Shown here: piece after piece, positions 7,586 to 23,879 of the stretch
Layout of the letters: every line of letters starts with the position of its first letter
Numbering within the stretch: position 1 is the first letter of the stretch
Made by a program: the position numbers and the translations under genes
The notes under the pieces: generated by a model
Databases searched by the model: none
Told to the model about the DNA's origin: nothing
What the model saw: only the letters and a program-made list of their open reading frames with translations
From: Obrimoposthia wandeli
Lineage: Eukaryota
Direction of reading: 5' to 3'
Length of the DNA: 64,000 nucleotides
Assembly: GCA_977020255.1 (NCBI GenBank)
Contig: CDROCS010001101.1
Coordinates: 620,001 to 684,000 of the forward strand

Positions 7586-9684
7586 CATTTCACTTTAATC
7601 TAAAAACACAGCTGCTATTCGTCGCCAGCTTAATGTTATTACTACCTTGGGCTGGTTGCCAAAGTGTCAGTATTTTAGAAACCAGCTTACGCCAAAGTCA
7701 TAGCCAATTACTCGATGCACAAATGACGGCAGCAGCCCAGCAGCTTGAGCGCAAACTAAATCAATCGCAATACACCCATTTAAATACCAACCAAGGTAAC
7801 TATTATGCCCCGCTCACCGACAGTAAAATGTTATTGGATGGGTTTGATGGTGAAGAAAGCGATTGGGATAATATTACCACCCCTTGGTTTCAGCTTAATA
7901 GCTATGACTACGTTGCAGAGCGTTACGAACCAGGGCTTCCCCTTACTGAAGAACCTACTATTTCAGCTAAATTTAAGCTCGCAGCAAATGATAAATTACT
8001 CTATATTTTTATTCAGACGAGCGCTCTTAGTCCACACTATTATAATCCAACTCAGCCACAGCGACCTGCAGACCAGCTTAACATCCGCAGTATCAATAAA
8101 ACTGGCCTTGTTTCGCGTTGGCAAATTAACCCACAAGGCTCTGGCCGTGTCGAGATGGAAAATACTAGCCAAGCAATGGTCACCAGCCGAGATGCTGGAT
8201 CATGGGTATGGCGCGATGGCCATTACACGATAGAAATTGCGATTCCAATTAGTTTAGCCAGTGATGCGATAGGTTTTGATCTTACGCTTAATGATCAGCA
8301 ATTAAATCAGCATTTCAAATCTAAACCGGGATCGACTTACGAACGCAGCCTAGTACGTGAAACATTGGATTTAAACCAGCAACTCGCTAGCTACCAACAA
8401 CCCGGCCTGAGTTTATATTTGCTCAATAGCCAATATTGGTTGGTTGGGCGACTTAATGCTGACACTGGAAGTGAAAGCCTAAGAGAAAGTGAAGTAAATG
8501 ACGATCAAGTCGATCCATCTTGGTTTAGCAACGCCATTTACAACAAATTATTCACCTCAGATTCACTGCCTTATTGGCGAGAACCCACAAGTTTAGGCCG
8601 TTGGTTATCACCACAGCAACTCGGACAAGCAACCTGGTATCAAGACTCTCCCATTAATAAACAACTGCACAGTAAAACCCTGTTTGTTAACGGCCTGCCA
8701 TATTATTTTGTCGCCGTACAAGATGCACGGCAAAGCTTACTATCAGCAAGTAAGGCGTTAAATCAGCTATTGATATTACTGTTTACGATCATCGCCATTA
8801 TCGTATCAGTATTATTTTCTTTTGCTTCGCTATTATCATGGCGTATTGTCAAAATGAAAAAAAATTACCGTAATGCTATTGATAGCGACGGTAAAATAAT
8901 GGCTGTTCCAGACGCCAGTAAATTACCCGACGAACTCGGGGATTTATCACGTGTAATGCAACAACTGACCATTAATCAAGGTAAATACACTGACTACTTA
9001 GCGTCACTGGCTGATAAATTATCTCATGAATTGAAGACCCCTGTGGCCGTTATACGTACATCACTGGAAAATTTGGAACTATCTAATTTAGATCCTGAGG
9101 CAAGCAAATACCTGACTCGTGCAATGCAAGGGACGAACCGTCTAAGCCAAACATTAAACGCCCTTAGTGAAGCCAATAAATTAGAGCAAAGTTTTGAATA
9201 TGCACAGTGGCAAGTTGTGCCGTTTGACGATATGTTAGAAGAGCTAACCGATGCTTACCGACAGATTTATAGTAGTCACCAATTTCAATTAACTTATGAT
9301 AAGAAAGAAGATTTTACGATTAATTTAGCACCAGAACTTATTGTACAATTACTCGATAAGCTCATCAGTAATGCTGTGGATTATGCGCCTGTCGATCAAC
9401 CGATATGCTTTACCCTTAATAAACTTGATGGCCAACTACAACTACAAATCGAAAATCAAGGGCCACACTTTAGCAGTGATAATATCCCGCAACTGTTTGA
9501 CTCTATGGTTTCCAATCGTCAGCAGTCTGCGATTCCCCATCTCGGCTTGGGGTTACATATTGTTAAGTTAATCAGTAATTTTCATCAGGCTAAAGTCAGT
9601 GCAGAAAATCTACCCGGTGAAAAAGGCGTTATATTTGAACTACTATTACCTATAGAATACATAAATAGACAGATAGATAAATAA
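7582..9684 (+). CDS. pdsS: Sensor histidine kinase, PdsS type
   Basis: GTG start overlapping pdsR stop; 2 TM with large periplasmic domain; HAMP-like linker; H-box LSHELKTPVAVIRTSLENL; N-box KLISNAVDY; G2 HLGLGLHIV. Confidence 0.75.
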   Translation: MTFHFNLKTQLLFVASLMLLLPWAGCQSVSILETSLRQSHSQLLDAQMTAAAQQLERKLNQSQYTHLNTNQGNYYAPLTDSKMLLDGFDGEESDWDNITTPWFQLNSYDYVAERYEPGLPLTEEPTISAKFKLAANDKLLYIFIQTSALSPHYYNPTQPQRPADQLNIRSINKTGLVSRWQINPQGSGRVEMENTSQAMVTSRDAGSWVWRDGHYTIEIAIPISLASDAIGFDLTLNDQQLNQHFKSKPGSTYERSLVRETLDLNQQLASYQQPGLSLYLLNSQYWLVGRLNADTGSESLRESEVNDDQVDPSWFSNAIYNKLFTSDSLPYWREPTSLGRWLSPQQLGQATWYQDSPINKQLHSKTLFVNGLPYYFVAVQDARQSLLSASKALNQLLILLFTIIAIIVSVLFSFASLLSWRIVKMKKNYRNAIDSDGKIMAVPDASKLPDELGDLSRVMQQLTINQGKYTDYLASLADKLSHELKTPVAVIRTSLENLELSNLDPEASKYLTRAMQGTNRLSQTLNALSEANKLEQSFEYAQWQVVPFDDMLEELTDAYRQIYSSHQFQLTYDKKEDFTINLAPELIVQLLDKLISNAVDYAPVDQPICFTLNKLDGQLQLQIENQGPHFSSDNIPQLFDSMVSNRQQSAIPHLGLGLHIVKLISNFHQAKVSAENLPGEKGVIFELLLPIEYINRQIDK

Positions 9685-9708
9685 ATAAACCGTCAATAAG
9701 GAGAAGTC

Positions 9709-10368
9709 ATGCTTATACGACCAATCGCAAAACGTAATGGTGTGACGTTTACTCTTGTCGCTGGTTTATTTATCTTTGCCAGTATTATTGCCCTGCTCTC
9801 AATCGCTAATAATAACAGTTTCTACTTTCCACTATTCGCTGGCTCGTTGATTATAGGTATCATCCTATTAATTATTGGGTTCGCCAAAATAAATGATGTC
9901 GATTATCGCTTTTCACTCACCAATGAAGGGATACATTATTTCACTGCGCGTGGCGGCTTCACTATTCTTTGGCAAGATATACAACGAATTGATATTCCTA
10001 AAATAAATGATGGTCTGGCACTAAAAGAACTACCTTACATAGGTATTCGCCTAACTCAACGAGAACACCTTATTAACAGCGCTTCATTACCCACCCTCTC
10101 GCACATGTTAGTAGAACAGCGTGCGCTTATCATGCTGACAAATCCCAATGGCACATTGTATGGCAATGCTGACAACATGCTTTACCCTAATATAAAAGTA
10201 ACCCATAAATATCAAGGGCTGCAGGCCATGTTCATCAATCGAATGCACTACCTTCACGACACGTTAGGTTATGATATTTACTTTCCGGAAGATGATCTTG
10301 ACCGCTCACCCGCGGAGTTTGTTACGCTATTACGTCAGTTTAAAGCAAATTGTCCTAGATCATCGTAA
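9709..10368 (+). CDS. DUF2982 family membrane protein
   Basis: RNGVTFTL, 2 TM, WQDIQRIDIP, LPYIGIRL, LGYDIYF...DLDR motifs. Confidence 0.75.
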   Translation: MLIRPIAKRNGVTFTLVAGLFIFASIIALLSIANNNSFYFPLFAGSLIIGIILLIIGFAKINDVDYRFSLTNEGIHYFTARGGFTILWQDIQRIDIPKINDGLALKELPYIGIRLTQREHLINSASLPTLSHMLVEQRALIMLTNPNGTLYGNADNMLYPNIKVTHKYQGLQAMFINRMHYLHDTLGYDIYFPEDDLDRSPAEFVTLLRQFKANCPRSS

Positions 10369-10435
10369 ACAATAATAATTATCAATTAGAGTTGCATTAA
10401 ACATTTTTATATGGATAATACGAACTATTCTCATT
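10368..10435 (+). promoter_or_regulatory. Two Fur-like boxes (10368-10386, 10417-10435) flanking or overlapping a sigma70-like promoter
   Basis: aacaataataattatcaat and aatacgaactattctcatt each match 13 of 16 defined positions of the Vibrio-type consensus AATGANAATNATTNTCATT; -35 ttgcat (10392) and -10 gataat (10414). Confidence 0.65.
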
Positions 10436-10482
10436 AAGGCTACAAAAATAATGTAGTCCATTAAAAATAAAAAGGATTTGTT

Positions 10483-12504
10483 GTGAAAAAATCTGCCCTT
10501 TGCTTTGCCATCTCTTCTGCGTTACTTACTGCTTCATTTGCATCACATGCTGCAAATGTAAAAGTACTTGATAAAACACTTTCTCCAGCAGCTAACTTTC
10601 TTGCTTATACCGAGTTCGAATTATCAGGTGAACCACTTGCTGAAGCGCTAGGTTTAGACCTTGATGTTTTAGACCCGAATCAAGTAGATCAACCAACTGC
10701 ATTCGATTATGCAGCGGGTATTGAAAGCTACGAATACTCAGAAGAAGCGATGTATGCGTTAAACTACCAGTCTACTATGGGTCCTCACCTAGTAAACGGT
10801 CCAGTTAACCAAGCACGCGGCGGTTCTCTTGCTGACTTAGGTAAACGTTTTATTTCTCTTGCGGGTGCAGTAGGCTTCCCAAGTGAAGAGATCCCATTAA
10901 ACATGTACCCTATCTCAGTACCTTACGTATCAGGTAACCCTGAATTCGTTGGTAAAGTAGATACAACCAAAGTGAATGGCGAAGAACTTGAAGTATTATC
11001 TGCTACAGGTAAAGCAGCAGTTCACAACACAGTGATCCCAGCTTATTTCCGTGACTACAAAACACTAGCATGGGACAGCGCAAGTTTCGATAAAGCCTTA
11101 AACCCAGGCGCAATCGGCAGTATCTTCCTTAAAGAAGTTATGTGGTCACAAGATTTCTTAGGTGGCATGCACGTTACGACGACAGACGAAGAAGTTGAAG
11201 CAACATCAAGCACAATGGATCAAGATGGTGTACACAGTCTTGGTGTATCCGCTGCCGATGGTTTCAACGGTATGATCTTAACTGAAATGTCGCTAGACAA
11301 GTTACTTATCCTGCAACAGCAACTTGGCTTTGACGGTAAGAACCTAGGCGTTAAATTTGGTCCTGATTATGATGCATCTAAAAACCCTATCTGGTTTGCA
11401 CATAAAGTAGCCGTTAAAGAAACACAGAAAAACAACGTAAATAACATCGGTAAACTGACAGTGACAGATGGTTCATCATCACTGCGTGATACGTGGATGC
11501 TATTATGGCCTGTCAGTGAATTCTATGCATTCACAGACCAACGTACTGCAAATACTGCACAAAACCCAGCGTTTAAAGCAGTATTTGATGGCAAACCATT
11601 TGCTGCAGCACCAAAACAAAACATTGATAACAAAACAAGCAATAATATCATTGCTGACGATGCGTTCTCAGTAGCAAGCAACGTGGCTAACCTATCGTTC
11701 CAAAACTTAGCAAACCTACATTTCAATGAGAAAGCAGGTACGTTTGTTACTAAGTACGACGGCAAGCAAAATGCACAAGTTGATACATTCGACGCGGCAT
11801 ACAGCATCGTAGCATTATCAATTTACCAACGTTCACAAGATGCATTACCTGTAGGTTATGCAGCAGCAGACGGCGGTGATGTAGATTTAGCAACACCTCA
11901 AGGTAAAAAAGCACTTGGTCTAATCAAAGCACAAGCAGATTACATCGTTAACACGTTAGTAGCGAAAAATGGTCTAGTATATGACGGCGCGACGATTGGC
12001 AAATCAGTAGATAAAAACCAATCACTTGACGCTCAATTCGCTTCAATCCGTGGTTTAGTTGCCGCTTACCTTGCTACACAAGACGACAGCTACAAGCAAG
12101 CAGCACGTTCAATCTTCCTTGCGGTAGAGAAAAACATGTTTGATGCTGAGCTAGGTACTTGGGCACAAACACCAGGTAAAGCAACAATCCACACACCATT
12201 AACTGCTGCAGCAATCTCTGGCGGTTTACGTGAAACAATACTTCACCTTGCTAACGAAGAAGGCGAACATGTTCCAGCTCTAGAACTACAACACTTAACT
12301 GAACGTTACACTGCTTGGTTCAAGAAAGTTGTTAACGGTGGCCAACAGTTATCAGAATGGGTTGGTGATTCAGGTGAAAACTTACTGAAAGACAGCAATA
12401 CTACTGATTCAGATAATGATGGTGTGAAACAAGTTACAGCTGCTGGCGGTAAATTTGGTACAGCACAAACGATGGCAGCAAAAGTATCGGTTAGTGCTAA
12501 ATAA
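10483..12504 (+). CDS. Uncharacterised secreted protein, 673 aa, C-terminal half possibly alpha/alpha-toroid; first gene of FTR1 cluster
   Basis: GTG start with AAGGA SD; signal peptide MKKSALCFAISSALLTASFASHA; helical repeat LDAQFASIRGLVAAYLATQDDSYKQAARSIF resembles six-hairpin glycosidase-like folds; strongly biased codon use. Confidence 0.7.
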   Translation: MKKSALCFAISSALLTASFASHAANVKVLDKTLSPAANFLAYTEFELSGEPLAEALGLDLDVLDPNQVDQPTAFDYAAGIESYEYSEEAMYALNYQSTMGPHLVNGPVNQARGGSLADLGKRFISLAGAVGFPSEEIPLNMYPISVPYVSGNPEFVGKVDTTKVNGEELEVLSATGKAAVHNTVIPAYFRDYKTLAWDSASFDKALNPGAIGSIFLKEVMWSQDFLGGMHVTTTDEEVEATSSTMDQDGVHSLGVSAADGFNGMILTEMSLDKLLILQQQLGFDGKNLGVKFGPDYDASKNPIWFAHKVAVKETQKNNVNNIGKLTVTDGSSSLRDTWMLLWPVSEFYAFTDQRTANTAQNPAFKAVFDGKPFAAAPKQNIDNKTSNNIIADDAFSVASNVANLSFQNLANLHFNEKAGTFVTKYDGKQNAQVDTFDAAYSIVALSIYQRSQDALPVGYAAADGGDVDLATPQGKKALGLIKAQADYIVNTLVAKNGLVYDGATIGKSVDKNQSLDAQFASIRGLVAAYLATQDDSYKQAARSIFLAVEKNMFDAELGTWAQTPGKATIHTPLTAAAISGGLRETILHLANEEGEHVPALELQHLTERYTAWFKKVVNGGQQLSEWVGDSGENLLKDSNTTDSDNDGVKQVTAAGGKFGTAQTMAAKVSVSAK

Positions 12505-12531
12505 CCGCCCTTTTGGCAACAAATAGCCATC

Positions 12532-12590
12532 TCGCAGCGCTAGCTTAACCTAAATTAGTTAGCCTAAATCAGTTAAGTTAAGCGTTGCGA
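12532..12590. repeat. Long imperfect inverted repeat in the intergenic region
   Basis: tcgcagcgct-agcttaac ... gttaagtt-a-agcgttgcga, with an internal near-duplicated 14-mer cctaaat(t/c)agtta. Confidence 0.7.
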
Positions 12591-12606
12591 AATTAAAATA
12601 AAAGTT

Positions 12607-12648
12607 GCAAAAAGGGATGAGATTTTACTCAGCCCTTTTTGCGTTTTC
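12607..12648 (+). terminator. Terminator-like hairpin inside the cluster
   Basis: gcaaaaagggatgag-atttta-ctcagccctttttgc followed by gtttt. Confidence 0.6.
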
Positions 12649-12676
12649 ATTACGTCGATATGAATAAGGTTTTATC

Positions 12677-13159
12677 ATGTCAGTTCAAGCAGCTACTCCA
12701 GCCGACGATAACGTCTGGTCACGTTTACAACAACATTTTAAACGTCTGGCCTTTCACCATAAAAAAGCGGAAGCAATATTATATTTAATGTTCTTATCGG
12801 GACTTTTATTGTGGCCGTTTATCACGATCCCATGGCAAGTAGAACGCACCGTATTACTCATGCACATGCTTGCTGGTATTAGTATATTTCCTGTTTTTGT
12901 TGGCAGCTTCTGGTTGTCGCACCGTAACTTGATCAAAAAAAGTAACAAGAAATTCTTGCGTCAAACAGGCACAATAATAGAATACTTACTTATTGCCTGT
13001 ACTCTTACCGGTATTTACCTGACGTTTTGGGGTAACACCGGCAATAATTTCAGTATCTTAATGCAAGATATCCATTTTTACAGCTCATGGTTACTCACCC
13101 CACTGGTTCTTCGTCACGCATGGCGCTGGACAGTCATTAAATTTTTTAGGAAGTCATAA
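12677..13159 (+). CDS. Putative di-heme cytochrome b-like 4-TM membrane protein
   Basis: Four TM helices; His pairs H63/H82 (TM2) and H133/H147 (TM4); SG and TG in TM1 and TM3, a typical cytochrome b heme-packing pattern. Confidence 0.65.
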   Translation: MSVQAATPADDNVWSRLQQHFKRLAFHHKKAEAILYLMFLSGLLLWPFITIPWQVERTVLLMHMLAGISIFPVFVGSFWLSHRNLIKKSNKKFLRQTGTIIEYLLIACTLTGIYLTFWGNTGNNFSILMQDIHFYSSWLLTPLVLRHAWRWTVIKFFRKS

Positions 13160-13160
13160 T

Positions 13161-13997
13161 ATGTTTGCCAGTTTTTTAATTACCTTCCGTGAAGGACTCG
13201 AAGCCTTCCTACTTGTTGGCATTATACTTTCTTACCTTGCAAAACTGGGCGAATCAAAGCACAACAAACTCATCTATATTGGTGTTGCACTCGGTTTGAT
13301 TGCGTCATTAATTGTTGCCTTCATTTTTCAGTTTGTAGTCGACCAGTTTGATTCCCATGAATACCGTAATTTATTAATGGCTGGTATTTTAAGCTTTGCG
13401 ACAGTCGTGCTTACCTACATGGCCATTTGGATGCAGCGCCAGGCTAAAAGCCAAGTCACGAACATGCAAAACAATATCCGCCAAATATTAACCACAGGTA
13501 ATGTTTTTGGGTTAATCTTTCTGGCCTTCCTTGCGGTGATGCGCGAAGGCTTTGAAACTGTGTTATTTTTCTCGGCATTGATGTATTCAGGCCAAGGCGA
13601 TTTTTCATTACAAGATGGATTAATTGGCGCTGGTGCAGGTCTTGTTGCATCACTGGTTCTCGTTATTGTACTAATGCGTGGCACCCGTAAAGTACCAATC
13701 CAAGCTTTCTTCAAATGGACCAGCTTGTTGATCATTATCATTGCCGCTGGTTTATTATCTTCAGCAACCAATATGCTACAGAGCGCCGACGTATTACCTG
13801 TATTCCAAACAGCGGTCTTTGATATTAGCCATATCCTTGATGACCAAGGTGTATTTGGTACTTTCTTACGGGCTTTATTTGGTTATAATTCATCACCTAA
13901 TCTATTACCTCTGATTGTTTGGGGCATTTATTTAGCGGTGTTCTCTGTGTTCTGGCAGCGTGGTTATCAAGTCCCGGCTAAAACAGCCGACGCTTAA
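13161..13997 (+). CDS. FTR1/EfeU family iron permease
   Basis: Two REXXE motifs (FREGLEA, MREGFET), about 7 TM, C-terminal LRALFGY. Confidence 0.92.
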   Translation: MFASFLITFREGLEAFLLVGIILSYLAKLGESKHNKLIYIGVALGLIASLIVAFIFQFVVDQFDSHEYRNLLMAGILSFATVVLTYMAIWMQRQAKSQVTNMQNNIRQILTTGNVFGLIFLAFLAVMREGFETVLFFSALMYSGQGDFSLQDGLIGAGAGLVASLVLVIVLMRGTRKVPIQAFFKWTSLLIIIIAAGLLSSATNMLQSADVLPVFQTAVFDISHILDDQGVFGTFLRALFGYNSSPNLLPLIVWGIYLAVFSVFWQRGYQVPAKTADA

Positions 13998-14064
13998 CTT
14001 AAAGAACAACAAAATAATAAAAGAGTGCTGGGTCTAAATAACATGAATCTACTTAGACCTTACA

Positions 14065-14083
14065 TATAAAAATAATAATCATT
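14065..14083 (+). promoter_or_regulatory. Possible Fur box upstream of the flavoprotein gene
   Basis: tataaaaataataatcatt matches 13/16 defined consensus positions, 9 bp before ATG 14093; AT-rich context lowers specificity. Confidence 0.4.
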
Positions 14084-14092
14084 GAGTACATA

Positions 14093-15562
14093 ATGTCGAA
14101 ACAAATTGTAATTTTAGGCGCAGGTCCAGCTGGACTAATGGCCGCATGGGAATTTAATCAAGCTGGCTATGAAGTCACTATTCTAGAGCGAGAAACATTT
14201 GTCGGTGGCATGTGCGCGACCCAAACATTCCAAGGCGAAAAAGGCGAATATCGTTTCGACTACGGTGGTCATCGCTTCATCACTAAAAACCCGAAATTAT
14301 TACAGTTTATCGATGACTTAATGACTGACGATCTACTTTATGCTGAGCGTACCAGCGTGATCCGTTTTAAAGGCCGTACTTACAACTACCCGCTCGCAAT
14401 TGGTAATTTACTGCGTAATGCGCCAATCAGTTTATTAGCAGGTGCTGCGGTAGATTTAGTATTTAAGCTACCATTCCAGAAGCGCCCTAGCGAACAAAGT
14501 ACCAGCAACTTTGCCGAGTGGATTGAAACGCGTTTTGGTACAACCTTATATAAAAACTTCTTCGAAGGTTACACAGGTAAACTTTGGGGTATCGACCCAC
14601 GTCAGCTCTCTGCAGACTGGGCGTCTCAACGCATTAGCTTGTTAGATTTAAAAGATGTAGCACGACGCTTAATACCCACTCGTGGCGCAACACCTCGTAC
14701 TTACGCTAAAAAATACCGTTATCCTAAACTCGGCTTTGGCCAAATGTATACCAAGCTTGCTGAAAAGTTACAGTTGCAAGGTGTAACGATAGTACAAGGC
14801 GCAAACATCACAGCGCTAAATCAAGGCCATGATCTACGTAATGAGCTTAATAAGAGCAATAGCATTGATGCCGTGACTTATGAGCTTAACGGTGAAACAC
14901 ATACGATTAATTGTGATCACGTGGTAGGCACAATCCCATTACCTGTAGTTTGTACATTAACAGGCTTTGATTCAGGTTTAACTTATCGTTCACTGCGCTT
15001 TTTTAACATGCCAATGGCGACAGAAAATGTGTCTCAGAATACCTGGCAGTATCTATCAGATCCTGAGTTACTGGGTACTCGCTTACAAGAACCTCGTCGT
15101 CGCTCACCCTTTATGGCACCCAAAGGTCAAACATCGGTTATGATCGAGATCCCTTGTGATAAAGGTGATGATGTTTGGAATATGGACAACGATAAACTAT
15201 TAAAACGAGTAAAAGAAGACCTGGATCATTTAGACGTACCAGATGTAAGTACAGGTGAATACTTTACTACTTATACTGAATACGCTTATCCAATGATGGA
15301 TGTAAGCTACAACGCCAAACGTGAACGTGCAATTACGCACCTTAACCAATTTGACAACTTGGTCATGACTGGTCGCCAAGGTACTTTCCGTTACATCTTC
15401 ACTGATACCGCTATGGAAATGGGCTTAATGGCCGCAGAAGGTATTATCAAAGGTGAAGATAACCGTCGCCAAATTTTTGATCACCGTAACGAAAAAACAG
15501 TGATTGAAGTGCAAAGTATAATGGATGATAAAAAAACACCGGAGGGTAAAAATGTCACTTAG
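14093..15562 (+). CDS. FAD-dependent oxidoreductase, UDP-galactopyranose mutase / protoporphyrinogen oxidase superfamily
   Basis: Rossmann GAGPAG, ERETFVGG (GG motif), FDYGGHRF, YTGKLWG, C-terminal GRQGTFRY..TDTAM. Confidence 0.8.
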   Translation: MSKQIVILGAGPAGLMAAWEFNQAGYEVTILERETFVGGMCATQTFQGEKGEYRFDYGGHRFITKNPKLLQFIDDLMTDDLLYAERTSVIRFKGRTYNYPLAIGNLLRNAPISLLAGAAVDLVFKLPFQKRPSEQSTSNFAEWIETRFGTTLYKNFFEGYTGKLWGIDPRQLSADWASQRISLLDLKDVARRLIPTRGATPRTYAKKYRYPKLGFGQMYTKLAEKLQLQGVTIVQGANITALNQGHDLRNELNKSNSIDAVTYELNGETHTINCDHVVGTIPLPVVCTLTGFDSGLTYRSLRFFNMPMATENVSQNTWQYLSDPELLGTRLQEPRRRSPFMAPKGQTSVMIEIPCDKGDDVWNMDNDKLLKRVKEDLDHLDVPDVSTGEYFTTYTEYAYPMMDVSYNAKRERAITHLNQFDNLVMTGRQGTFRYIFTDTAMEMGLMAAEGIIKGEDNRRQIFDHRNEKTVIEVQSIMDDKKTPEGKNVT

Positions 15563-16178
15563 TTCGATACAATCATTTAGTGTGATTAACGCAAAAACAG
15601 TAAAGTCGTTCTTTTTCAGTTTCTTCGTATTGCTATTTAGTACGCAAAGTTTTGCTTACTCTTATGCTGCAGCTGGTAAAGAACCTTTAATTGAAGGCCG
15701 TGAAACATTATTGAAAGCCTTATCAGCAAATGATTACACTGCAGTGCAAACGGCATATGACTCAATGCTGGCAGAGTTTGTTTACTTTAATGAGCATCAT
15801 GGTCTAAATGTTGATGAGCAAATGCAAACAGCGATCACAAACCAAGATCAACAAGGTGTGGCTACAGCCTTAACCACCACCATGAAGGCAGAAGTAATGC
15901 GCCGCCTTGAAGGTGCAGAGCAAAACATCAACGATTACCAAGTCGCTAAAGTCCTCGTGGTCAAAAGTAAGTTATTTATTGATTTACTGGCCGCTGATTT
16001 AACGGCTGATAATCGCCAGAAAGCAGATTTAGCGATCCGTGGGGCGCTTGCCTCTATCGGTAACCCTGGTGTATTTGGTGTTGGCCAAAAACCTGCGGAT
16101 GTAACGCGCTTCATTGCCTTCCGTACTGACTTACAAGCGGCACTGCAATTCACATTACCCGATGCTCCAACGAAGTAG
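15552..16178 (+). CDS. Uncharacterised secreted all-helical protein
   Basis: ATG 15552 with GGAGG SD, overlapping the upstream stop; signal peptide ending QSFA; mature YSYAAAGKEP...; amphipathic helices. Confidence 0.7.
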   Translation: MSLSSIQSFSVINAKTVKSFFFSFFVLLFSTQSFAYSYAAAGKEPLIEGRETLLKALSANDYTAVQTAYDSMLAEFVYFNEHHGLNVDEQMQTAITNQDQQGVATALTTTMKAEVMRRLEGAEQNINDYQVAKVLVVKSKLFIDLLAADLTADNRQKADLAIRGALASIGNPGVFGVGQKPADVTRFIAFRTDLQAALQFTLPDAPTK

Positions 16179-17577
16179 TAAGCCTTGCTACACTGATTTA
16201 ATTGTCGGTATTAGCGTAATAGCCTGCATTGCAGGCTATTTTGGCTTACTCAATTATTATAGTTTTGATATTAGTAGTGATGATGCACTGTATTTTCAGC
16301 GCGCATTAACTTATTTTTCGGTATTAGAATTCAGCCCACACTTTCCCGGTTATCCCGGCTTTGTTTGGTTTGAACGCTGTATCGCTGCAATCACTTCCCA
16401 TCCCAATAGTAATGTATTATTAAGTTTTCTTTCAGCTATCGCGTTAACGTTCAGCATCTTTGTCTATTGCTATCAACGTATGCAATCAAAGGGGTTTACT
16501 GTCCTTGCCGTTATGCTTTTTTTACTGCAAGGCAATATTGCTGAATTGGCCTTTAATGGCTTGTCTGATGCGACCGCACTGTGGTTCTTCAGCTTATATT
16601 TATTACAGGCTCACCTGTATACGCGGCCCACTACGAACATTGAAAAAAAAGATAAATACTCAGCACTAATCGGTGGACTGCTATTAGCGGCATGCCTCGC
16701 TACCCGTCCCTCTTATTTACCGCTAGTCGCGAGCGCACTGGTTTTAGAGTTTATCTATCACCCTCAGGGACGATTACGTTTTAAGTGGCTCGGTTGGCAA
16801 TTATTCAGTATCACAATCCTTGGGTTATTTTGCGCTGGTTATGTCTTTATGCAAGATGGCTGGGCATATATTGAAGAAGGCCAACGCTTTACCCAAGGTC
16901 ACTTTACTATTTGGGGCAATACCACCAGTACAACAGATTCTTTATTACAACAATGGCTAACAACCCTAACCAATACCTATTCAAGTTTAGGGCTTGCCTT
17001 ATTAACCACGAGCCTTACCATCGGCCTTTATATACCCAAGACACGTGGTCTTAGTATTCTCGCTTGTTGCTGGTTTGCATGGATAATTCGTGGACAAAAT
17101 CCAGAAAACATTCGCCATTTAGCTGTTTTTAGCTTGTTGTTACCCATCATAATCGCTCAATTAATGGCACATTTTTATCAGCAAAAAAACCTCCGGCCTA
17201 TCCTATACGTGTTTAGTATTATATTACTGGTAACACTGGGTTATCACAGTCTAAAACAGTTCTCAGAGCAGAAACATGCCCCGGCATTACAAGCAACTCA
17301 GTTTTTTGACGCAATGAATACGCAACAGATTATTATCAGTAATTATAATATCGATAATTTGCGTCACACTTTACCGCAACACGTCATTTTAGATCGCCAC
17401 TATCAAAACAGCAGTAATTACCAAGCTCAACAGCAAGGATACTGGCGACTGAGCAGTAATACACTTGGCACTAATAAACTGGGTAATGATGATTTGGTAG
17501 CACAATTTAAAGGTCGTTTTCTGGGGGAACGTAGTTTATACCTCTATTATTTTGATCCTAATCATTTTAGCCCGTAA
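16162..17577 (+). CDS. GT-C fold (PMT/ArnT-like) polytopic membrane protein, putative glycosyltransferase
   Basis: Likely ATG 16162 overlapping the upstream stop; about 10-11 TM; first external loop SDDALYF...SPHFPGYP; later LACLATRPSY motif. Confidence 0.6.
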   Translation: MLQRSSKPCYTDLIVGISVIACIAGYFGLLNYYSFDISSDDALYFQRALTYFSVLEFSPHFPGYPGFVWFERCIAAITSHPNSNVLLSFLSAIALTFSIFVYCYQRMQSKGFTVLAVMLFLLQGNIAELAFNGLSDATALWFFSLYLLQAHLYTRPTTNIEKKDKYSALIGGLLLAACLATRPSYLPLVASALVLEFIYHPQGRLRFKWLGWQLFSITILGLFCAGYVFMQDGWAYIEEGQRFTQGHFTIWGNTTSTTDSLLQQWLTTLTNTYSSLGLALLTTSLTIGLYIPKTRGLSILACCWFAWIIRGQNPENIRHLAVFSLLLPIIIAQLMAHFYQQKNLRPILYVFSIILLVTLGYHSLKQFSEQKHAPALQATQFFDAMNTQQIIISNYNIDNLRHTLPQHVILDRHYQNSSNYQAQQQGYWRLSSNTLGTNKLGNDDLVAQFKGRFLGERSLYLYYFDPNHFSP

Positions 17578-17592
17578 ACATAACTGCAATTA

Positions 17593-17636
17593 TTGCACTA
17601 TCGCGCCAAAACTATATAATGATAACCATTCTTAAT
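17593..17636 (+). promoter_or_regulatory. Internal sigma70 promoter overlapped by a Fur-like box
   Basis: -35 ttgcac (17593), perfect -10 tataat (17615, 16-bp spacer); aatgataaccattcttaat (17618-17636) matches 13/16 Fur consensus positions. Confidence 0.65.
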
Positions 17637-17672
17637 CGTAATACCCTTCACCTCTATCAAGATGCTGTATCT

Positions 17673-20600
17673 ATGAATATCAATATGAATATAAATACAT
17701 TGCCAAAATTAATGCTTACTTTGTTATTGCTAATAACTAGCTCACTTTACGCCAGTACTGCTTATGCAAGTACGACTGAAACTAAAAGTAACTATGCAAA
17801 TACCAAAAGTAACAGCTTATTACTATCAACTGATAAAACGCAGTTTATTAGTGCAAATATGGATGCAGGTAGCGTCAGTATTTTGAATGCAGAGACAGGT
17901 GAATTAATCGCAGAGCAAGCCTTAGGTAAAGACCTTCGTCGCCTCGCGCTCGACCCGGTTAACAACCAATTATTAGTCAGTGATTATCTTGCCAATCAGC
18001 TCTACCTTATTGATGCAAAGAGCCTAGCTTTAATCAAAACTATTAAAACCGGTGACCGCCCTTTCGGTATTGTCTACGACGAATATAATAAACAATATTA
18101 CGTCACTTTATTTGAAGCAAAGCAGCTATTAACCGTTTCAATTGATGGTGAAATAACCGCGACAACCAAAACAGCAGATACCCCGCGTGGCCTTGCTCTT
18201 GCAAATGACGGGCGTTTATTTGTCACCCACAGCATGACAGGTCAAGTATCTATTTATGATACGCGTTCTGCTACCTTGCAATCAAACACGTTGAAATCAA
18301 ACAAACTACAATTAAAAAAAGTTATTCAGCTTGTCGATACACCAGCACATGCATCACGCGCAGTACCACAGGGTAAACCTCGTGTACTCGATAATATTGC
18401 GATATCGCCCGATGGCACGCAAGCTTGGCTACCGCATGTATTATGGTCATTCGCGGATAATTTTCAATTTCAATCGACTGTCTTCCCCACTATTTCATTA
18501 CTTGACCTGACACCAGGCAAAGAAAAGGAAATGGTTGATAAACGTAAACAGTTATTCAAACAAATAAACATCATTGAAAATAACAACACCACGCGTATTG
18601 TATCGAACCCACACGATGCCGCATTCCGCGAAGACGGTAAAAAAGTATTCATTACCTTATCAGGTTCAGAAGATCTACTGGTGTTTGATCTGTCGCGCCA
18701 AGGAAAAATTGGTAAAAAATCGAAGCGTCATCGCCGAACTAAATTACAAGGCGGCGTAAAAGCGACGCAAATATACCGTCATATACCCGGAACTAACCCG
18801 CGTAGCCTAATTGAAAAAGACGGCACACTGTATGTTCAAAATGCCATGTCTCACGACTTAGTCAGTTTTGATGTCAGTGGTAAAGGTCCTTTTGCTAAAG
18901 TTAAATTAGCGAATGCGCAATTCGCTAAATTAATTAGTCACGATCCAATAGCACCAGAATTACGTTTAGGCAAAACCCTCTTCAATCTTGCAAACAGCGA
19001 TAAATTTGAAAACTCTGCCATGGCGGGTGATTTCTGGATGAGCTGTAACTCTTGTCATGTTGACGGTTTTAACTTTACCAACAAATACTTATTAGCGGAC
19101 GGTACTAAAGACGTTAAAGTAAATGCGATGACAGGCCACGTTGGGCTCGCCAGCATGATTGCCGGTGATCCGATTGAAGCTTACATTGATATGATCCAAA
19201 AGACGCAAGGTGGTATGGGTACTGATCCTAAAAAGCCAGAACTACCAAAAGTCGATCCTAAAGATCCTTCGGTAGAGATTGTACGTTTGATGTCAGCATT
19301 AAACATGTACGTCACCACTAAAGAGAATTTACCTTATTTATCAACTTGGTTACGTTTTGATGACGAACGCAAGTTCACCCATAAATCAGAATGGCTAAAT
19401 TCAGCAAGTTGCGAATCATGCCACAGCACCCTGTATAAACAGTGGTCAAATTCAAACCACGGCATGCACATGGATAGCCCTTATTATCGCTTCCAAGAAA
19501 ATCTCGCCGCAGAGTCAGAAGGTGAACCCTTTAGAAACTTATGTCGAGGCTGCCATGCACCGCAAACGATTCTAAATAACAATACAGCGCCACTGACTCA
19601 CCTCAACAGTATGTACGAGAAAGAAGGTCAATCACTACGTGATGCATTGAAAGAAGGTCTACCTGTCGATGAAACAGGAACCAGTTGTGTATTCTGTCAC
19701 CGTATAACCAAAGCTGAAGATGCTGGTGGTAATACCGATCTGACTGTTAACTTAAAAGATCGCGCTGAATACTTGTTTGAATTTTCGAGTAACCCAGCGT
19801 TAAAACTCATTGCCGAAGCACAAATAAATGCATCGCCACAGCAACACAAAGACAGCTATTCAAACCCTGAACTGTATAAAAGCTCATTATATTGTGCTAC
19901 TTGCCATAATGAGTTCACACCAGGTCAAGGTGCTAACGTGAATAATAACTATGGTGAATGGCAAGCCTCTAAATTTAACGCACCAGACAACCCAGAACAG
20001 AATAAAACCTGTATCGATTGTCACATGCGCTTAGACATGACTGACTTTGATAAGAAAGTACCAGGTCAAGCAACCGATAATGGCCCAATTAAGCCCAACT
20101 TAATTGCCCATAACTTTATTGGTGGTAACTACTACTTCTCTGATATGCGTTCGAAAGAACACGGTAAACTAAGCCGCGATATATTACGCAATGCACTGTT
20201 ACTTGATGTAGAAGCCAGCGAAGATGGCAGTAGCATCGACGTGAAGGTAACAAACCATAATACCGGTCATAAGATGCCAGGTGGCGCACGTCGTCAAGTA
20301 TGGGTTGATTTAGTTGTCACAGACAGCCAAGGCGTTGAACGCTTAGTCAGCGGCCAACTAAACGATGGTTATCTACCAAAAGACAGTCGTGTATTCGCCA
20401 AGAAAAGTGGTTATATGCACGGGGAACCGGTGGGACTTAAATTCTGGCGTGTAGAAAAAATTCTATCGGATACCCGTATATCACCCGATGAAACACGTAT
20501 TGAAACGTTTGAACTTCCTGAGGGGCTGAGTTATCCAATCACAGTAGTCGCTAAGATTAACTACCGCTCATTTTCGAAGCCGTTAACGAGTAAGGTACAA

Positions 20601-20681
20601 GCAGCGTTCCCTGAACAGGACATTCCTTTTGCTGATGTGATTGAATTAAATAAAGTAACCAAAGTGTTCCAGAAAAAGTAA
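17673..20681 (+). CDS. YVTN/YncE-type beta-propeller fused to hexaheme cytochrome c
   Basis: Signal peptide; propeller repeats (TGDRPFGIV, TADTPRGLAL, LDNIAISPDG, SNPHDAAF); six CXXCH: CNSCH, CESCH, CRGCH, CVFCH, CATCH, CIDCH. The track's ATG 17619 lies inside the Fur box, so 17673 is preferred. Confidence 0.85.
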   Translation: MNINMNINTLPKLMLTLLLLITSSLYASTAYASTTETKSNYANTKSNSLLLSTDKTQFISANMDAGSVSILNAETGELIAEQALGKDLRRLALDPVNNQLLVSDYLANQLYLIDAKSLALIKTIKTGDRPFGIVYDEYNKQYYVTLFEAKQLLTVSIDGEITATTKTADTPRGLALANDGRLFVTHSMTGQVSIYDTRSATLQSNTLKSNKLQLKKVIQLVDTPAHASRAVPQGKPRVLDNIAISPDGTQAWLPHVLWSFADNFQFQSTVFPTISLLDLTPGKEKEMVDKRKQLFKQINIIENNNTTRIVSNPHDAAFREDGKKVFITLSGSEDLLVFDLSRQGKIGKKSKRHRRTKLQGGVKATQIYRHIPGTNPRSLIEKDGTLYVQNAMSHDLVSFDVSGKGPFAKVKLANAQFAKLISHDPIAPELRLGKTLFNLANSDKFENSAMAGDFWMSCNSCHVDGFNFTNKYLLADGTKDVKVNAMTGHVGLASMIAGDPIEAYIDMIQKTQGGMGTDPKKPELPKVDPKDPSVEIVRLMSALNMYVTTKENLPYLSTWLRFDDERKFTHKSEWLNSASCESCHSTLYKQWSNSNHGMHMDSPYYRFQENLAAESEGEPFRNLCRGCHAPQTILNNNTAPLTHLNSMYEKEGQSLRDALKEGLPVDETGTSCVFCHRITKAEDAGGNTDLTVNLKDRAEYLFEFSSNPALKLIAEAQINASPQQHKDSYSNPELYKSSLYCATCHNEFTPGQGANVNNNYGEWQASKFNAPDNPEQNKTCIDCHMRLDMTDFDKKVPGQATDNGPIKPNLIAHNFIGGNYYFSDMRSKEHGKLSRDILRNALLLDVEASEDGSSIDVKVTNHNTGHKMPGGARRQVWVDLVVTDSQGVERLVSGQLNDGYLPKDSRVFAKKSGYMHGEPVGLKFWRVEKILSDTRISPDETRIETFELPEGLSYPITVVAKINYRSFSKPLTSKVQAAFPEQDIPFADVIELNKVTKVFQKK

Positions 20682-20694
20682 CCAACGCACTTCT

Positions 20695-20734
20695 CGGTCT
20701 AGCCATATTCTAAGCGTTAAATATGGTTAGACCG
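20695..20734. terminator. Stem-loop closing the cluster
   Basis: cggtctagccatatt ... aatatggttagaccg inverted repeat. Confidence 0.55.
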
Positions 20735-20822
20735 TGGCAAGTTACTTATATTCATTAAATAATTCGCCTTTTTGCTAATTCGGCATAAGCTTATAGATAA
20801 CTTTGTTAATAAAGCACTCTTT

Positions 20823-21458
20823 ATGCATTCATATATCGCTAAGCAGCCGATTTTAAACAGCGCCCGTCAAATTGTCGCTTATGAGCTTTTGTATCGTGAC
20901 AGTTTAGAAAATACCTTTCCAATGATTAATGCTGAGATCGCCACTGAGCGCTTAGTTGAAGAACATTTGTTAAACTCTAATATCAATAAACTCGTTGATA
21001 ATAAGCCCTACTTCATCAATTTTACCGAAAAATGCATACTCGCAGGCTTGCCAATAAAACTCATCAACAAGCCTATCATTATTGAAGTACTAGAAGATGT
21101 GCCGCCAACGAAAGCGATATTTAATGCGTTAACAAAATTGAAAAATATGGGATTTACCATCGCGCTGGATGATTTTATTTATTCTGAAGAATGGTTACCT
21201 TTTTTTAGCATTATCGATATTATCAAGTTTGATATTACCCTCACCTCTTTTAAAGAAATAAAAACGCTAAAGCCATTATTAGACCAACATCAAGTCAGTA
21301 TATTAGTTGAAAAAATAGAAACGGAATGGCAATTTAAGCAAGCTAAAAATCTGGAGGGTAAATATTTTCAAGGTTATTTATTCTCTGAACCAGAGATAGT
21401 ATTAAATGAGATTAATAGGCAGGATATAAAAGGAACACAGGTGATAAGCATCATTTAA
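20823..21458 (+). CDS. EAL-domain protein of YuxH/CdgJ type, lacking the usual C-terminal HDOD domain
   Basis: MHSYIAKQPIL...YELLYRD, FINFT, IIEVLEDV, IALDDF, EKIET, YFQGYLFSEP; ORF stops about 20 aa after the EAL domain. Confidence 0.75.
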   Translation: MHSYIAKQPILNSARQIVAYELLYRDSLENTFPMINAEIATERLVEEHLLNSNINKLVDNKPYFINFTEKCILAGLPIKLINKPIIIEVLEDVPPTKAIFNALTKLKNMGFTIALDDFIYSEEWLPFFSIIDIIKFDITLTSFKEIKTLKPLLDQHQVSILVEKIETEWQFKQAKNLEGKYFQGYLFSEPEIVLNEINRQDIKGTQVISII

Positions 21459-22171: not shown

Positions 22172-23767
22172 TTATACTTTACGACTTAATCGAGCCATGA
22201 TACCAACCACAACAGTAAATGCAATTACTGACGCGATAAATCCAGATAGTACAGAACTTGTAATACCAAGCACCAAGTAACCAATAGCACTTACTAACGC
22301 AATTGATAACGCATAAGGTAACTGAGTCATTACGTGGTCCATATGGTGGCAGTTAGCACCCGTTGACGATAAGATCGTTGTATCAGAGATAGGTGAACAA
22401 TGATCACCAAATACCGAACCCGCTAACACAGATGCTAGCATAGGTAACATTAACGTCATGTCCGTACCCGCAGCCATGTCACCAGCGATTGGTAACATGA
22501 TACCGAATGTACCCCAGCTCGTGCCTGTCGCAAATGCCATAAAGCCTGCTAGAACAAACATAATAACCGGCAGTAAATAAGCTGGAATAGACCCGCCAAC
22601 TGTCGTAGCAAGGTATTTACCTGTTTCGATAGAACCAATTGTCGAACCAATCGCCCATGCGAAGAACAAGATATAAACCGCTGGTAGCATTGATTTCGCA
22701 CCGTGGAAACTTGCTTGTGCTAACAATGATACCGACACACCAGAAATAAGACTTAATACCAAGGCTACAGCAAGACCAGATAATGCACCGTATACCAATG
22801 AGCTACCTACATCTGTATTTTCAAATGCACCTAGAATGTCGAAGGCTTTACCATCTGCAGCAAGTGATGAAGCACCTGAGTTAATCATGAAGAAGATAGT
22901 TGCAAAGATAAGCACAAGGATCGGAAGGATAAGGCCTAAGATGTGACCACCTTCAGCTTCTTTTAATTCAACCGTAGCACCCGCTGGACGGCCTTTCTTA
23001 TCATCAAATAATTTGCCTTCTTTCGCTGCTTCTTCTTCTTTCGCCATTAAACCAAAATCAAGGTTTAACATCGCAACAGCAAATACCATTGCGATAGCAA
23101 AGATAGCGTAAAAGTTCATCGGGATCATTTCTACAAACGCAGCAAGTGGGCTGACATCTGTAATTGCATGACTTGCTAAAATACCACCGATAACGGCAAT
23201 AATATAAGCACCCCAGCTTGAAATCGGCATTAATACACACATAGGTGCAGCAGTCGAATCAAGTAAGTAAGCTAATTTAGCGCGTGATACTTTGTAGCGG
23301 TCTGTCAATGGACGACTCACACTACCTACCGCAAGGCTATTAAAGTAATCATCAACAAAAATGAAGATACCTAAAAATGCAGTCAATAATATACTGCCAC
23401 GACGTGTAGTAATGCGTTGTTTAGCCCAGTCAGCAAATGCACTTGTTGCGCCACTTACCATCATGATACTTGTTAGCATACCGAGTATGAACAAGAATAC
23501 GATGATGGATAGATTCCAAGTGTTGAATGAACCCACTTCCCAGAACGAGCCCTTGCTCGCATCACCTGATTCCCAAACTAAGCTTAGCGCTAAGTCTGAA
23601 ACGTGTTTAGCCGCGTTAACAACATTAAAATCTGTTAAAAATAGTGCGCCAAGTAAAATACCACAACCAAGTGATAACAATACTTTACGCGTTACAATTG
23701 CTAATGTAAGTGCAACTAATGGTACAACCAGCGATAATGCTGAGTCTGAGTAATTAATGAGTTCCAT
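22172..23767 (-). CDS. lysW: NhaC family transporter, probable lysine transporter (LysW type)
   Basis: IFVDDYFNSLAVG, VSRAKLAYLLDSTAAP, GTSWGTFGIM, FGDHCSPISDTT; directly downstream of a lysine riboswitch. Confidence 0.8.
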   Translation of the reverse strand: MELINYSDSALSLVVPLVALTLAIVTRKVLLSLGCGILLGALFLTDFNVVNAAKHVSDLALSLVWESGDASKGSFWEVGSFNTWNLSIIVFLFILGMLTSIMMVSGATSAFADWAKQRITTRRGSILLTAFLGIFIFVDDYFNSLAVGSVSRPLTDRYKVSRAKLAYLLDSTAAPMCVLMPISSWGAYIIAVIGGILASHAITDVSPLAAFVEMIPMNFYAIFAIAMVFAVAMLNLDFGLMAKEEEAAKEGKLFDDKKGRPAGATVELKEAEGGHILGLILPILVLIFATIFFMINSGASSLAADGKAFDILGAFENTDVGSSLVYGALSGLAVALVLSLISGVSVSLLAQASFHGAKSMLPAVYILFFAWAIGSTIGSIETGKYLATTVGGSIPAYLLPVIMFVLAGFMAFATGTSWGTFGIMLPIAGDMAAGTDMTLMLPMLASVLAGSVFGDHCSPISDTTILSSTGANCHHMDHVMTQLPYALSIALVSAIGYLVLGITSSVLSGFIASVIAFTVVVGIMARLSRKV

Positions 23768-23879
23768 GATCCCTTTGACCTAATAAGTTTTATAGGAAGC
23801 GACTGAACAAGACAGATGAGATATGGCATAAGGCTATTTACAAATGATGTATGTAAAGATAACACTTACAACTCTTCTA

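Follow-up and report, generated by a model that had tools for sequence, protein, structure and literature searches.

Bacterial and fungal FTR1 permeases are found with several kinds of partner. In the FtrABCD system of Bordetella, Brucella, and Burkholderia, an FTR1-family permease (FtrC) is combined with a periplasmic metal carrier (FtrA/P19), a periplasmic one-electron oxidase (the cupredoxin FtrB), and a membrane electron-transfer protein (the polyferredoxin FtrD), and the system responds to iron. In EfeUOB/M of Escherichia coli, Bacillus subtilis, and Pseudomonas syringae [PMC9174327], an FTR1-type permease with two REXXE motifs is accompanied by EfeO or EfeM (Peptidase_M75), and in EfeUOB also by EfeB, a heme protein that is a Tat-exported DyP peroxidase. 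The reductive iron assimilation of yeast (Fre1 and Fet3-Ftr1) combines an FTR1 permease with a multicopper oxidase and a NOX-type reductase, that is, with a transmembrane diheme b electron carrier and a flavoprotein. Two other systems are also relevant here: the three-component extracytoplasmic glycosylation systems, which consist of a GT2, a flippase, and a GT-C protein (CsbB/GtcA/YfhO, ArnC/ArnT), and E. coli YncE, a periplasmic seven-bladed YVTN-type propeller of the Fur regulon that has no heme domain and lies beside a TonB-dependent receptor.

An earlier note on a 64,000-nucleotide stretch of DNA (the window; contig CDROCS010001101.1, positions 620,001 to 684,000, of the Obrimoposthia wandeli assembly GCA_977020255.1) proposed that it encodes a heme-based FTR1 iron-acquisition system of seven genes with Fur-like boxes at three positions. 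The window is Moritella DNA within this 1.35-Gb assembly. As shown below, what the note had observed is confirmed, while its interpretation is only partly supported.

The locus and its products

Seven ORFs, here called g1 to g7, lie on the + strand around the permease gene (Table 1). Their spacing is tight: one base separates the g2 stop codon from the g3 start codon, and g4/g5 and g5/g6 overlap by 38 and 65 nt, respectively, although the start codons of g5 and g6 are uncertain. Below, loci used for comparison carry L numbers and genomes G numbers.

Table 1. Features of the cluster, in positions of the window
Feature	Position	Strand	Description
g1 promoter region	10365..10432	+	Overlapping Fur-like boxes at 10365 (14/19), 10371 (13/19), and 10414 (13/19)
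g1	10483..12504	+	Secreted 673-aa protein with signal peptide; predicted (alpha/alpha)6-barrel fold; no Pfam family
Hairpin	12606..12650	+	Strong hairpin followed by a U-tract; probable terminator or attenuator
g2	12677..13159	+	160 aa, 4-TM, DUF4405-like candidate diheme cytochrome b
g3	13161..13997	+	FTR1/OFeT-family permease with two REXXE motifs
Fur-like box	14065..14086	+	Weak (14065/14068, 13/19), upstream of g4
g4	14093..15562	+	Cytoplasmic FAD protein, UGM-like, NCBIfam NF005547
g5	15525..16178	+	217-aa secreted protein, predicted helical bundle
g6	16114..17577	+	Polytopic GT-C-type membrane protein
Fur-like box	17615..17633	+	15/19, about 40 nt upstream of the probable g7 start
g7	17619..20681	+	Periplasmic beta-propeller plus hexaheme cytochrome c (from sequence); probable start at Met19 (17673)

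The permease g3 matches PF03239 at 159.7 bits against a cut-off of 25.3 (E 1e-46), and its two motifs in transmembrane helices, REGLE at residue 10 and REGFE at residue 128, are conserved in nine orthologues, Firmicutes included. However, it scores only 207 bits with the EfeU equivalog model NF041756, below the cut-off of 255.

Two of the proteins have the features of heme carriers. In g2, four His (63, 82, 133, and 147), arranged as H-x18-H on helix 2 and H-x13-H on helix 4, are invariant in ten sequences, and three to four hydrophobic segments are present. The protein gave no Pfam hit even at E 10; a feature search of the Atlas placed DUF4405 first at 0.91, followed by Ni_hydr_CYTB and Cytochrom_B561, while a PDB profile search returned only FdnI, at E 2.4. 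In g7, six CXXCH motifs, with no other Cys, and six further His are invariant in eight sequences. A YncE/YVTN-type propeller lies N-terminal (PDB 3vgz matches residues 71-165), whereas the heme region hits Cytochrome_C7, MtrC/MtrF domain II/IV, c554, and ExtKL only weakly. In all, 196 homologues of g7 were found.

The flavoprotein g4 gives hits to PF01593, PF13450, and GLF. NF005547 scores 582 bits against a cut-off of 380, GLF 37.1 bits against 26.3, and NAD_binding_8 has E 7e-16. A profile matches eukaryote-type UDP-galactopyranose mutases (UGMs), including AfUGM, at E 3e-27 with the GGH motif kept. However, the pyrophosphate-binding Arg of AfUGM (R182) aligns with Glu, the M-R-P-Y segment of AfUGM being aligned with F-E-G-Y of g4 at high posterior probability, and the UGM equivalog TIGR00031 scores 66 bits against a cut-off of 304. 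Thus, g4 is UGM-like but lacks the aligned UGM Arg, and any role given to it is conjectural.

The g6 protein of the window has no Pfam hit itself, but its Arcobacter orthologue hits PMT_2 at 31.9 bits against a cut-off of 26.1 (E 2e-7), other orthologues hit TMEM260-like, Mannosyl_trans4, and EpsG weakly, and the homologue in locus L060 is recorded as TMEM260_N. An Asp in the S-D-D-A region of the first loop, after TM1, is invariant across 11 sequences, Firmicutes included. A PHFPGYP motif is likewise invariant and shared with the Firmicute homologues, at least six hydrophobic segments are present, and an HMM of the family matches those homologues at E 1e-27 to 1e-40.

The remaining two proteins are predicted to be secreted. 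The AF2 model of g1 (pLDDT 88) resembles AGE-type epimerases and GH76 (PDB E 1e-6, TM at most 0.55), and the same whole fold occurs fused to c-type cytochrome domains in AFDB; 469 homologues of g1 were found. The mature N-terminus of g5 has an invariant Y-S-Y motif, and a GNPG-x-FGVG motif is also conserved, but the protein has no conserved His or Cys. Its AF2 model (pLDDT 94) gives only generic helical-bundle matches and no known metal-binding fold. The g5 family is small, with 162 clusters among 1.84 billion representatives. A complex prediction for FTR1 and g5 gave no verdict.

Conservation of the gene set

Conservation outside this strain had been named beforehand as a test of the proposal, and the cluster is in fact conserved; the arrangement is more than chance. 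All seven genes are syntenic in five Moritella loci and one Vibrio MAG; the flanking genes are not conserved in the MAG, which sets the borders at g1 and g7. The same set occurs in different gene orders in Flexibacterium and Amorphus (Alphaproteobacteria), Arcobacter (Campylobacterota), Aeromonas bivalvium, and one further contig; the complete set recurs in rearranged order in three phyla. In four lineages (L009, L058, L059, and L064), g2 is fused to g7, and in L009, L058, and L059 the g4 gene overlaps the FTR1 stop codon. Among 401 genomes of the order, g1 is present in 29 and g5 in 28, with an overlap of 28, even where the two are unlinked, as in Aeromonas; most lineages counted here, however, fall into two clades (Moritella and Aeromonas-like). 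In the one genome with only g1-g2-g7, g7 is split into two ORFs and g5 was not found.

A smaller core reaches further. FTR1, g5, and the GT-C-type protein also occur together in Paenibacillus, Exiguobacterium, and another Firmicute-type contig (L065), next to GT2, flippase-like (LPG_synthase_TM), and sulfatase-like genes, and without heme proteins. The g5 gene directly flanks FTR1 in the Firmicute loci L063 and L065, one gene intervenes in L062, and in Proteobacteria only g4 separates the two.

None of the seven proteins hits a cupredoxin, ferredoxin (Fer4), M75, P19, or DyP family. PF09375 (M75) was not found in the genomes of three carriers (G001, G465, and G571), while control genomes gave hits. 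PF10634 (P19) was not found in G001 or G571, and in G465 the only copy lies about 500 kb from the cluster. The genome of the Moritella relative has a single FTR1, and no M75/EfeO or P19 gene was found in it.

Evidence for regulation and transcription

Fur-like boxes were scored against the plain consensus GATAATGATAATCATTATC, and this is a consensus-match test only. Boxes of at least 14/19 lie upstream of the first gene, at the same relative position, in L001, L006, L040, L041, L057, and L058, that is, in six of eight non-alphaproteobacterial loci checked, and none is found in the alphaproteobacterial locus checked (L009). Of 107 intergenic segments, 11 score at least 14/19, and 8 of those are cluster promoters. 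A box identical to that before g7 is present in L001 and L002, whereas the boxes before g4 are not above background. In Aeromonas, g1 sits beside a catechol-siderophore NRPS operon with 16/19 Fur boxes. Iron-dependent transcription is thus inferred from sequence.

The hairpin between g1 and g2 has a dG of -20.8 kcal/mol (z -4.9). Contigs from marine RNA libraries cover g2-g3, g3 through g6, and the g6-g7 junction. They break at 12563-12663, which is suggestive only, and DNA carry-over into these libraries cannot be excluded.

A model for the system and its alternatives

Taken together, these results lead us to the hypothesis (probability roughly 0.55) that the cluster is an iron-starvation-induced, multi-component FTR1-type import system whose redox partner is a chain of b and c hemes. 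Sequence and comparison directly support the permease with both motifs, a dedicated extracytoplasmic candidate partner (g5), a GT-C-type protein and a UGM-like flavoprotein that always travel with the permease, a module of g2 and g7 that is one polypeptide in several lineages, and a periplasmic protein (g1) that co-occurs with the rest even when unlinked. The mechanism, by contrast, including iron transport, Fur binding, the direction of electron flow, the target of glycosylation, and all of the biochemistry, is inferred. In this model, the parts map one-to-one onto FtrABCD: g3 corresponds to FtrC, and g7, g2, and g5 (perhaps also g1) take the places of FtrB, FtrD, and FtrA/P19. Periplasmic Fe(II) would be oxidized at g7, and the electrons would pass along the six c hemes and two b hemes to the quinone pool or the cytoplasmic face. 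Fe(III) would be handed, possibly through the Tyr-rich N-terminus of g5, to the REXXE path of the permease, and g6, using a lipid-linked sugar, would glycosylate an extracytoplasmic component, with g5 the leading candidate. Oxidation is only marginally favored over reduction. It should also be noted that since the Firmicute versions have FTR1, g5, and GT-C but no heme proteins, a heme redox step is not intrinsic to this permease class.

The earlier note had likewise inferred that a quinone-linked cytochrome b and a periplasmic multiheme cytochrome supply the Fe(II)/Fe(III) step and that the secreted proteins bind iron or a chelate. That the seven genes form one conserved functional unit, that g2 and g7 look like a diheme cytochrome b and a hexaheme cytochrome c, that the known partners are missing from the cluster, and that Fur-like boxes upstream of the first gene are conserved across lineages are all supported, but roles for the hemes in the redox step and for the secreted proteins in iron binding remain conjecture. 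The note also regarded the flavoprotein and the GT-C protein as a pair that modifies a component. However, g5 and g6 are not an accessory modifying pair; together with FTR1 they form the most widely conserved core, and the heme module and g1 are the lineage-specific additions. The glycosylation part is therefore central.

Other explanations have been considered. In a reductive variant, which we regard as possible but less likely, electrons would pass outward from quinol or a cytoplasmic donor, possibly g4, through g2 to g7, to reduce periplasmic Fe(III) complexes perhaps held by g1, much like the yeast Fre1 step or bacterial FoxB-type diheme reductases, and the released iron would be taken up by g5 and FTR1. 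The two His pairs of g2 are placed to hold one heme near each membrane face, an arrangement typical of transmembrane electron carriers, and the Atlas neighbors point the same way. In addition, the hosts are mostly marine, where Fe(III) complexes are the scarce resource, and the system appears Fur-controlled; PepSY_TM genes lie near the cluster in L058 and L059; and g1-like folds occur fused to c-type cytochrome domains. However, characterized FTR1-family systems, as far as is known, couple uptake to oxidation rather than reduction, g4 always follows FTR1 and never g2, it is absent from the g1-g2-g7 remnant, and its closest relatives are non-redox mutases.

It is less likely still that the cluster is primarily an envelope glycosylation or other periplasmic redox system, in which the FTR1 homologue moves another cation (Pb, Mn, Cu) or has a non-transport role and the Fur-like boxes are incidental AT-rich sequence. 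Genes for the GT-C protein, the UGM-like enzyme, and, in Firmicutes, GT2, flippase-like, sulfatase-like, and epimerase proteins do dominate the conserved core, one g5 domain is fused to a sulfatase-GT2 protein in a locus with no FTR1 within 15 kb, and some FTR1-family members are reported to carry lead. Yet both REXXE motifs are conserved in every orthologue, Fur-like boxes are enriched specifically at cluster promoters in independent lineages, g1 lies beside a siderophore operon in Aeromonas, and this is the only FTR1 gene in the Moritella relative. Finally, the hairpin after g1, the internal Fur-like boxes, and the unlinked g1 of Aeromonas might suggest two or three unrelated operons that happen to lie together in Moritella, but this is very improbable and already contradicted by the recurrence of the complete set in rearranged order and by the co-occurrence of g1 and g5.

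Relationship to described systems

No published description of this combination was found in the searchable literature. Although the cluster resembles FtrABCD in its general plan and in its apparent response to iron, the inferred redox centers are two b hemes and six c hemes, and the GT-C protein, the UGM-like flavoprotein, and the (alpha/alpha)6-barrel protein have no counterpart there. Compared with EfeUOB/M, the heme partner is a c-type hexaheme on a propeller, apparently wired to a membrane cytochrome b, rather than a DyP peroxidase. Compared with yeast, there is no multicopper oxidase, the b-heme protein is a 160-aa DUF4405-like protein, and the flavoprotein is UGM-like and linked to the permease gene rather than to the b-heme gene. 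The g6 protein has the GT-C hallmarks, and the Firmicute clusters carry the GT2 and flippase-like genes beside it, but no such glycosylation system is known to us next to, and co-inherited with, a metal permease. YncE and g7 are both periplasmic seven-bladed YVTN-type propellers, but YncE lies beside a TonB-dependent receptor rather than an FTR1 permease.

What is new, then, is the co-occurrence of g1 with g5 and the core of FTR1, g5, and GT-C that extends into Firmicutes. A more far-reaching reading, which is tentative and on balance unlikely, is that there is a widespread but unrecognized class of FTR1 iron importers, from Firmicutes to Proteobacteria, in which the permease works only with a dedicated extracytoplasmic helical partner that is made functional by a co-inherited GT-C glycosyltransferase. 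Iron uptake would then depend on extracytoplasmic glycosylation, and in Gram-negative lineages a fused or split b/c-heme wire would act as the ferroxidase and feed the electrons of assimilated Fe(II) into the respiratory chain.

Organization and Genomic Setting of the Cluster

Analysis of the region revealed seven co-oriented ORFs, g1 to g7, whose positions are collected in the table below together with those of other features of interest. The third of these, g3, is an FTR1-family permease (PF03239, E 1e-46) with REGLE and REGFE motifs, although it scores below the cut-off of the EfeU equivalog model. The product of g4 is a cytoplasmic flavoprotein of NCBIfam NF005547, a family without an assigned function, and contains Amino_oxidase, NAD_binding_8, and GLF domains. 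The product of g7 combines a YVTN/YncE-type propeller with six CXXCH motifs; its real start is probably Met19, which leaves a good signal peptide. In contrast, searches of Pfam and NCBIfam revealed no family for g1, g2, g5, or g6.

The DNA itself is that of Moritella, since its proteins are 90-99% identical to those of neighbouring Moritella species. Nevertheless, it belongs to a 1.35-Gb assembly of 6912 contigs, and it is therefore a bacterial contig, from a contaminant or an associate, inside what is presumably the assembly of a eukaryote.

Positions of the cluster genes and of other features in this DNA and in related loci
Feature	Position	Strand	Description
Whole stretch	620001-684000 of contig C1101		Moritella DNA
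Unassigned ORF	2189-3406	-	405 aa, no Pfam family
Fur-consensus matches	2815 and 3232		15/19 and 16/19, inside the 405-aa ORF
Upstream genes	6881-10368	+	OmpR-type response regulator, 700-aa histidine kinase, and DUF2982 protein, directly upstream of the cluster
g1	10483-12504		predicted (alpha/alpha)6-barrel protein
Gap between RNA-library contigs	12563-12663		strong hairpin with a U-tract
g2	12677-13159		membrane protein with four invariant His
g3	13161-13997		FTR1-family permease
RNA-library contig match	13782-16445		end of g3 into g6
g4	14093-15562		NF005547 flavoprotein
g5	15525-16178		predicted helical-bundle protein
g6	16114-17577		GT-C-type membrane protein
g7	17619-20681		propeller with six CXXCH; probable start at 17673
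Downstream gene	20772-21458		228-aa protein with a partial EAL domain
Antiporter gene	22172-23767	-	Na+/H+ antiporter (NhaC-type) family
Lysine riboswitch	23878-24062	-	120.9 bits, upstream of the antiporter gene
GC-rich segment	48001-52000		GC content 0.45, against about 0.40 elsewhere
TPP riboswitch	57527-57626	+	83.6 bits
g1 homologue region, Aeromonas caviae (loci L007/L008)	9004-12001		unlinked g1 after a DUF1439 gene
Remnant locus (L041, genome G786)	10426-15989		g1-g2-g7 only
Fusion protein (locus L060)	1942-5244		1100 aa; sulfatase/phosphodiesterase-like, GT2, and g5 domains
Genes following g6, Aeromonas bivalvium (locus L057)	17554-19230		second GT-C-clan membrane protein and an MFS transporter

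The placement of the lysine riboswitch upstream of an antiporter gene is an ordinary, known arrangement.

Conservation of the Seven Genes as a Unit

Several findings indicate that the seven genes constitute one unit. All seven are syntenic in five Moritella loci and in a Vibrio MAG, in the latter at 33-68% protein identity, while the flanking kinase, DUF2982, and EAL genes are not conserved in that MAG; the regulator, kinase, and DUF2982 genes upstream are conserved only within Moritella. Furthermore, the same set occurs elsewhere in other orders: g1-[g2+g7]-FTR1-g4-g5(-g6) in Flexibacterium, Amorphus, and a further contig; FTR1-g4-g5-g6-g1-[g2+g7] in Arcobacter; and g2-g7-FTR1-g4-g5-g6 in Aeromonas bivalvium. 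In the last of these, g6 is followed by a second GT-C-clan membrane protein (PTPS_related, E 3.5e-4) and an MFS transporter. In four lineages g2 is fused to the N-terminus of g7, with an extra hydrophobic segment located where the g7 signal peptide would be.

Co-occurrence is also seen when the genes are not linked. In a sample of 401 genomes of the order, g1 is present in 29 and g5 in 28, and 28 have both, including Aeromonas-like genomes in which the two genes are 50-110 kb apart. The single exception (G786) has only g1-g2-g7, its g7 is split into two ORFs, and no g5 was found in that genome; this locus looks like decay after loss of the permease module. However, when a sample was drawn evenly at the class level around a Moritella genome (G001), g1 was found only in G001 itself (1 of 401), indicating that the system is rare at that scale.

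Evidence for a Link to Iron

Boxes that match the 19-bp Fur consensus at 14/19 or better lie upstream of the first gene in Moritella, the Vibrio MAG, two further gammaproteobacteria, Aeromonas bivalvium, and Arcobacter, where three promoters carry them. None was found in the one alphaproteobacterial locus checked (L009), whose class uses other iron regulators. Among 107 intergenic segments of nine loci, 11 reach 14/19, and 8 of these are cluster promoters. Within the 64 kb of the Moritella DNA, the box before g7 (15/19) is among the three best, the other two being those inside the 405-aa ORF, whereas the box before g4 (13/19) is at background level.

In most Aeromonas genomes, the g1 homologue is unlinked from the FTR1 module and sits after a DUF1439 gene, divergent from a catechol-siderophore NRPS operon (isochorismate synthase, isochorismatase, and 2,3-DHB-AMP ligase type genes) whose promoter carries two 16/19 Fur boxes. 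In addition, the Moritella relative was found to have one FTR1 gene and neither an M75/EfeO nor a P19 gene.

Features of the Individual Proteins

Four His of g2, arranged H-x18-H and H-x13-H on two helices, are invariant in ten sequences, and a feature search of the Atlas places the protein next to DUF4405, Ni_hydr_CYTB, and cytochrome b561 clusters. The g7 protein keeps its six CXXCH, no other Cys, and six further invariant His. The g1 protein is predicted with confidence (pLDDT 88) to fold into an (alpha/alpha)6 barrel with added sheets that is distantly like AGE epimerases and GH76. However, a fold search of the PDB returned only distant barrels of this type (TM at most 0.55, about 10% identity), and consequently g1 is not called an epimerase or a glycosidase. 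AFDB contains the same whole fold fused to c-type cytochrome domains.

The g5 protein is predicted (pLDDT 94) to be a helical bundle, but fold searches with this model returned only generic four-helix bundles (best Z 9.0; EfeM at Foldseek E 1.5), from which no functional conclusion is drawn. After the signal peptide, g5 starts with an invariant Y-S-Y motif, and it carries a GNPG-x-FGVG motif. A prediction of the complex of FTR1 with mature g5 returned no answer (score 0.00), which counts neither for nor against binding. The g6 protein has an invariant Asp in the first loop and a PHFPGYP motif, and its orthologues hit GT-C families. The nearest solved relatives of g4 are eukaryote-type UDP-galactopyranose mutases (E 3e-27). 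Although the GGH motif is kept, the Arg that binds the pyrophosphate aligns with Glu, and the idea that g4 is a bona fide UGM was therefore dropped.

A Heme-Free Core in Firmicutes

An exhaustive profile search with g5 has altered this picture. Only 162 clusters were found, some of which are in Firmicutes. In Paenibacillus, Exiguobacterium, and a third contig, g5 lies next to, or one gene from, an FTR1 gene with both REXXE motifs and close to a g6 homologue (HMM E 1e-27 to 1e-40), surrounded by GT2, LPG_synthase_TM (flippase-like), sulfatase-like, and epimerase genes. No cytochrome is present. The Firmicute g5 proteins keep the Y-S-Y start and the GNPG motif, and they carry a membrane anchor. 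In another locus (L060), a g5 domain is fused to sulfatase/phosphodiesterase-like and GT2 domains in one protein, which is followed by a Cu_amine_oxidN1 protein, a TMEM260_N-type GT-C, a UDP-glucose dehydrogenase, and an epimerase; a cupredoxin gene and an SBP_bac_1/11-type binding protein are nearby. Thus, FTR1, g5, and GT-C form the conserved core, which is embedded in what looks like a three-component extracytoplasmic glycosylation pathway, while g1 and the b/c-heme module are additions found so far in Proteobacteria and Campylobacterota.

Evidence on Transcription of the Cluster

Contigs from two marine metatranscriptome libraries match the cluster at 95-99%, spanning g2 into g3, the end of g3 into g6, and the g6-g7 junction. 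They leave a gap where the strong hairpin with a U-tract lies (dG -20.8 kcal/mol, z -4.9). A pattern scan for sigma-70 promoters and terminators was at background and missed this g1-g2 hairpin. The pattern of contigs and gap fits transcription of g2-g7 with g1 partly insulated, but it should be noted that contigs cannot prove this and that DNA carry-over is not excluded.

Proposed Mechanism and Relation to Known FTR1 Systems

The most economical reading maps the proteins onto FtrABCD. In this model, g3 is the permease, g7 would be the periplasmic one-electron oxidase in place of the cupredoxin, g2 would be the membrane electron sink in place of the polyferredoxin, and g5, and perhaps g1, would be the periplasmic iron carrier. 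Oxidation of Fe(II) is favored because all FTR1 systems studied are oxidase-dependent and because many of the hosts live at oxic-anoxic boundaries. However, the alternative, in which electrons flow outward to reduce Fe(III) complexes, is nearly as likely. The role of g6 and g4 is inferred only from family resemblance and from the Firmicute neighbourhoods, and the acceptor may be g5. While the gene set and its recurrence are seen directly in the sequences, the assignments of this model, including oxidation, iron carriage, and glycosylation, remain inferences without experimental support.

FTR1-type permeases are thought always to need a redox partner, and four partner types are recognized: multicopper oxidase, EfeO/EfeB, P19 (FetP), and cupredoxin with polyferredoxin (PMC9174327). 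That 2022 paper lists the recognized bacterial FTR1 systems as EfeUOB/M, FtrABCD, FetMP, P19-cFtr1, and FepABC. In the literature searched, no description was found of the present arrangement or of DUF4856, and one apparent hit (PMC9012536) concerned an unrelated "Ftr" enzyme. The cluster is regarded as an FTR1 system, itself a familiar type, with a partner set that has not been described.

Taken together, these findings suggest that the cluster would add a fifth partner type, built on heme, in ecologically and veterinarily relevant bacteria such as Moritella, Aeromonas, Vibrionaceae, and Arcobacter. They also expose an unexpected and deeply conserved link between an iron permease and a GT-C-type glycosylation pathway, and they give a functional context to five protein families that currently have no annotation, namely g1, g2, g5, g6, and the NF005547 flavoproteins.
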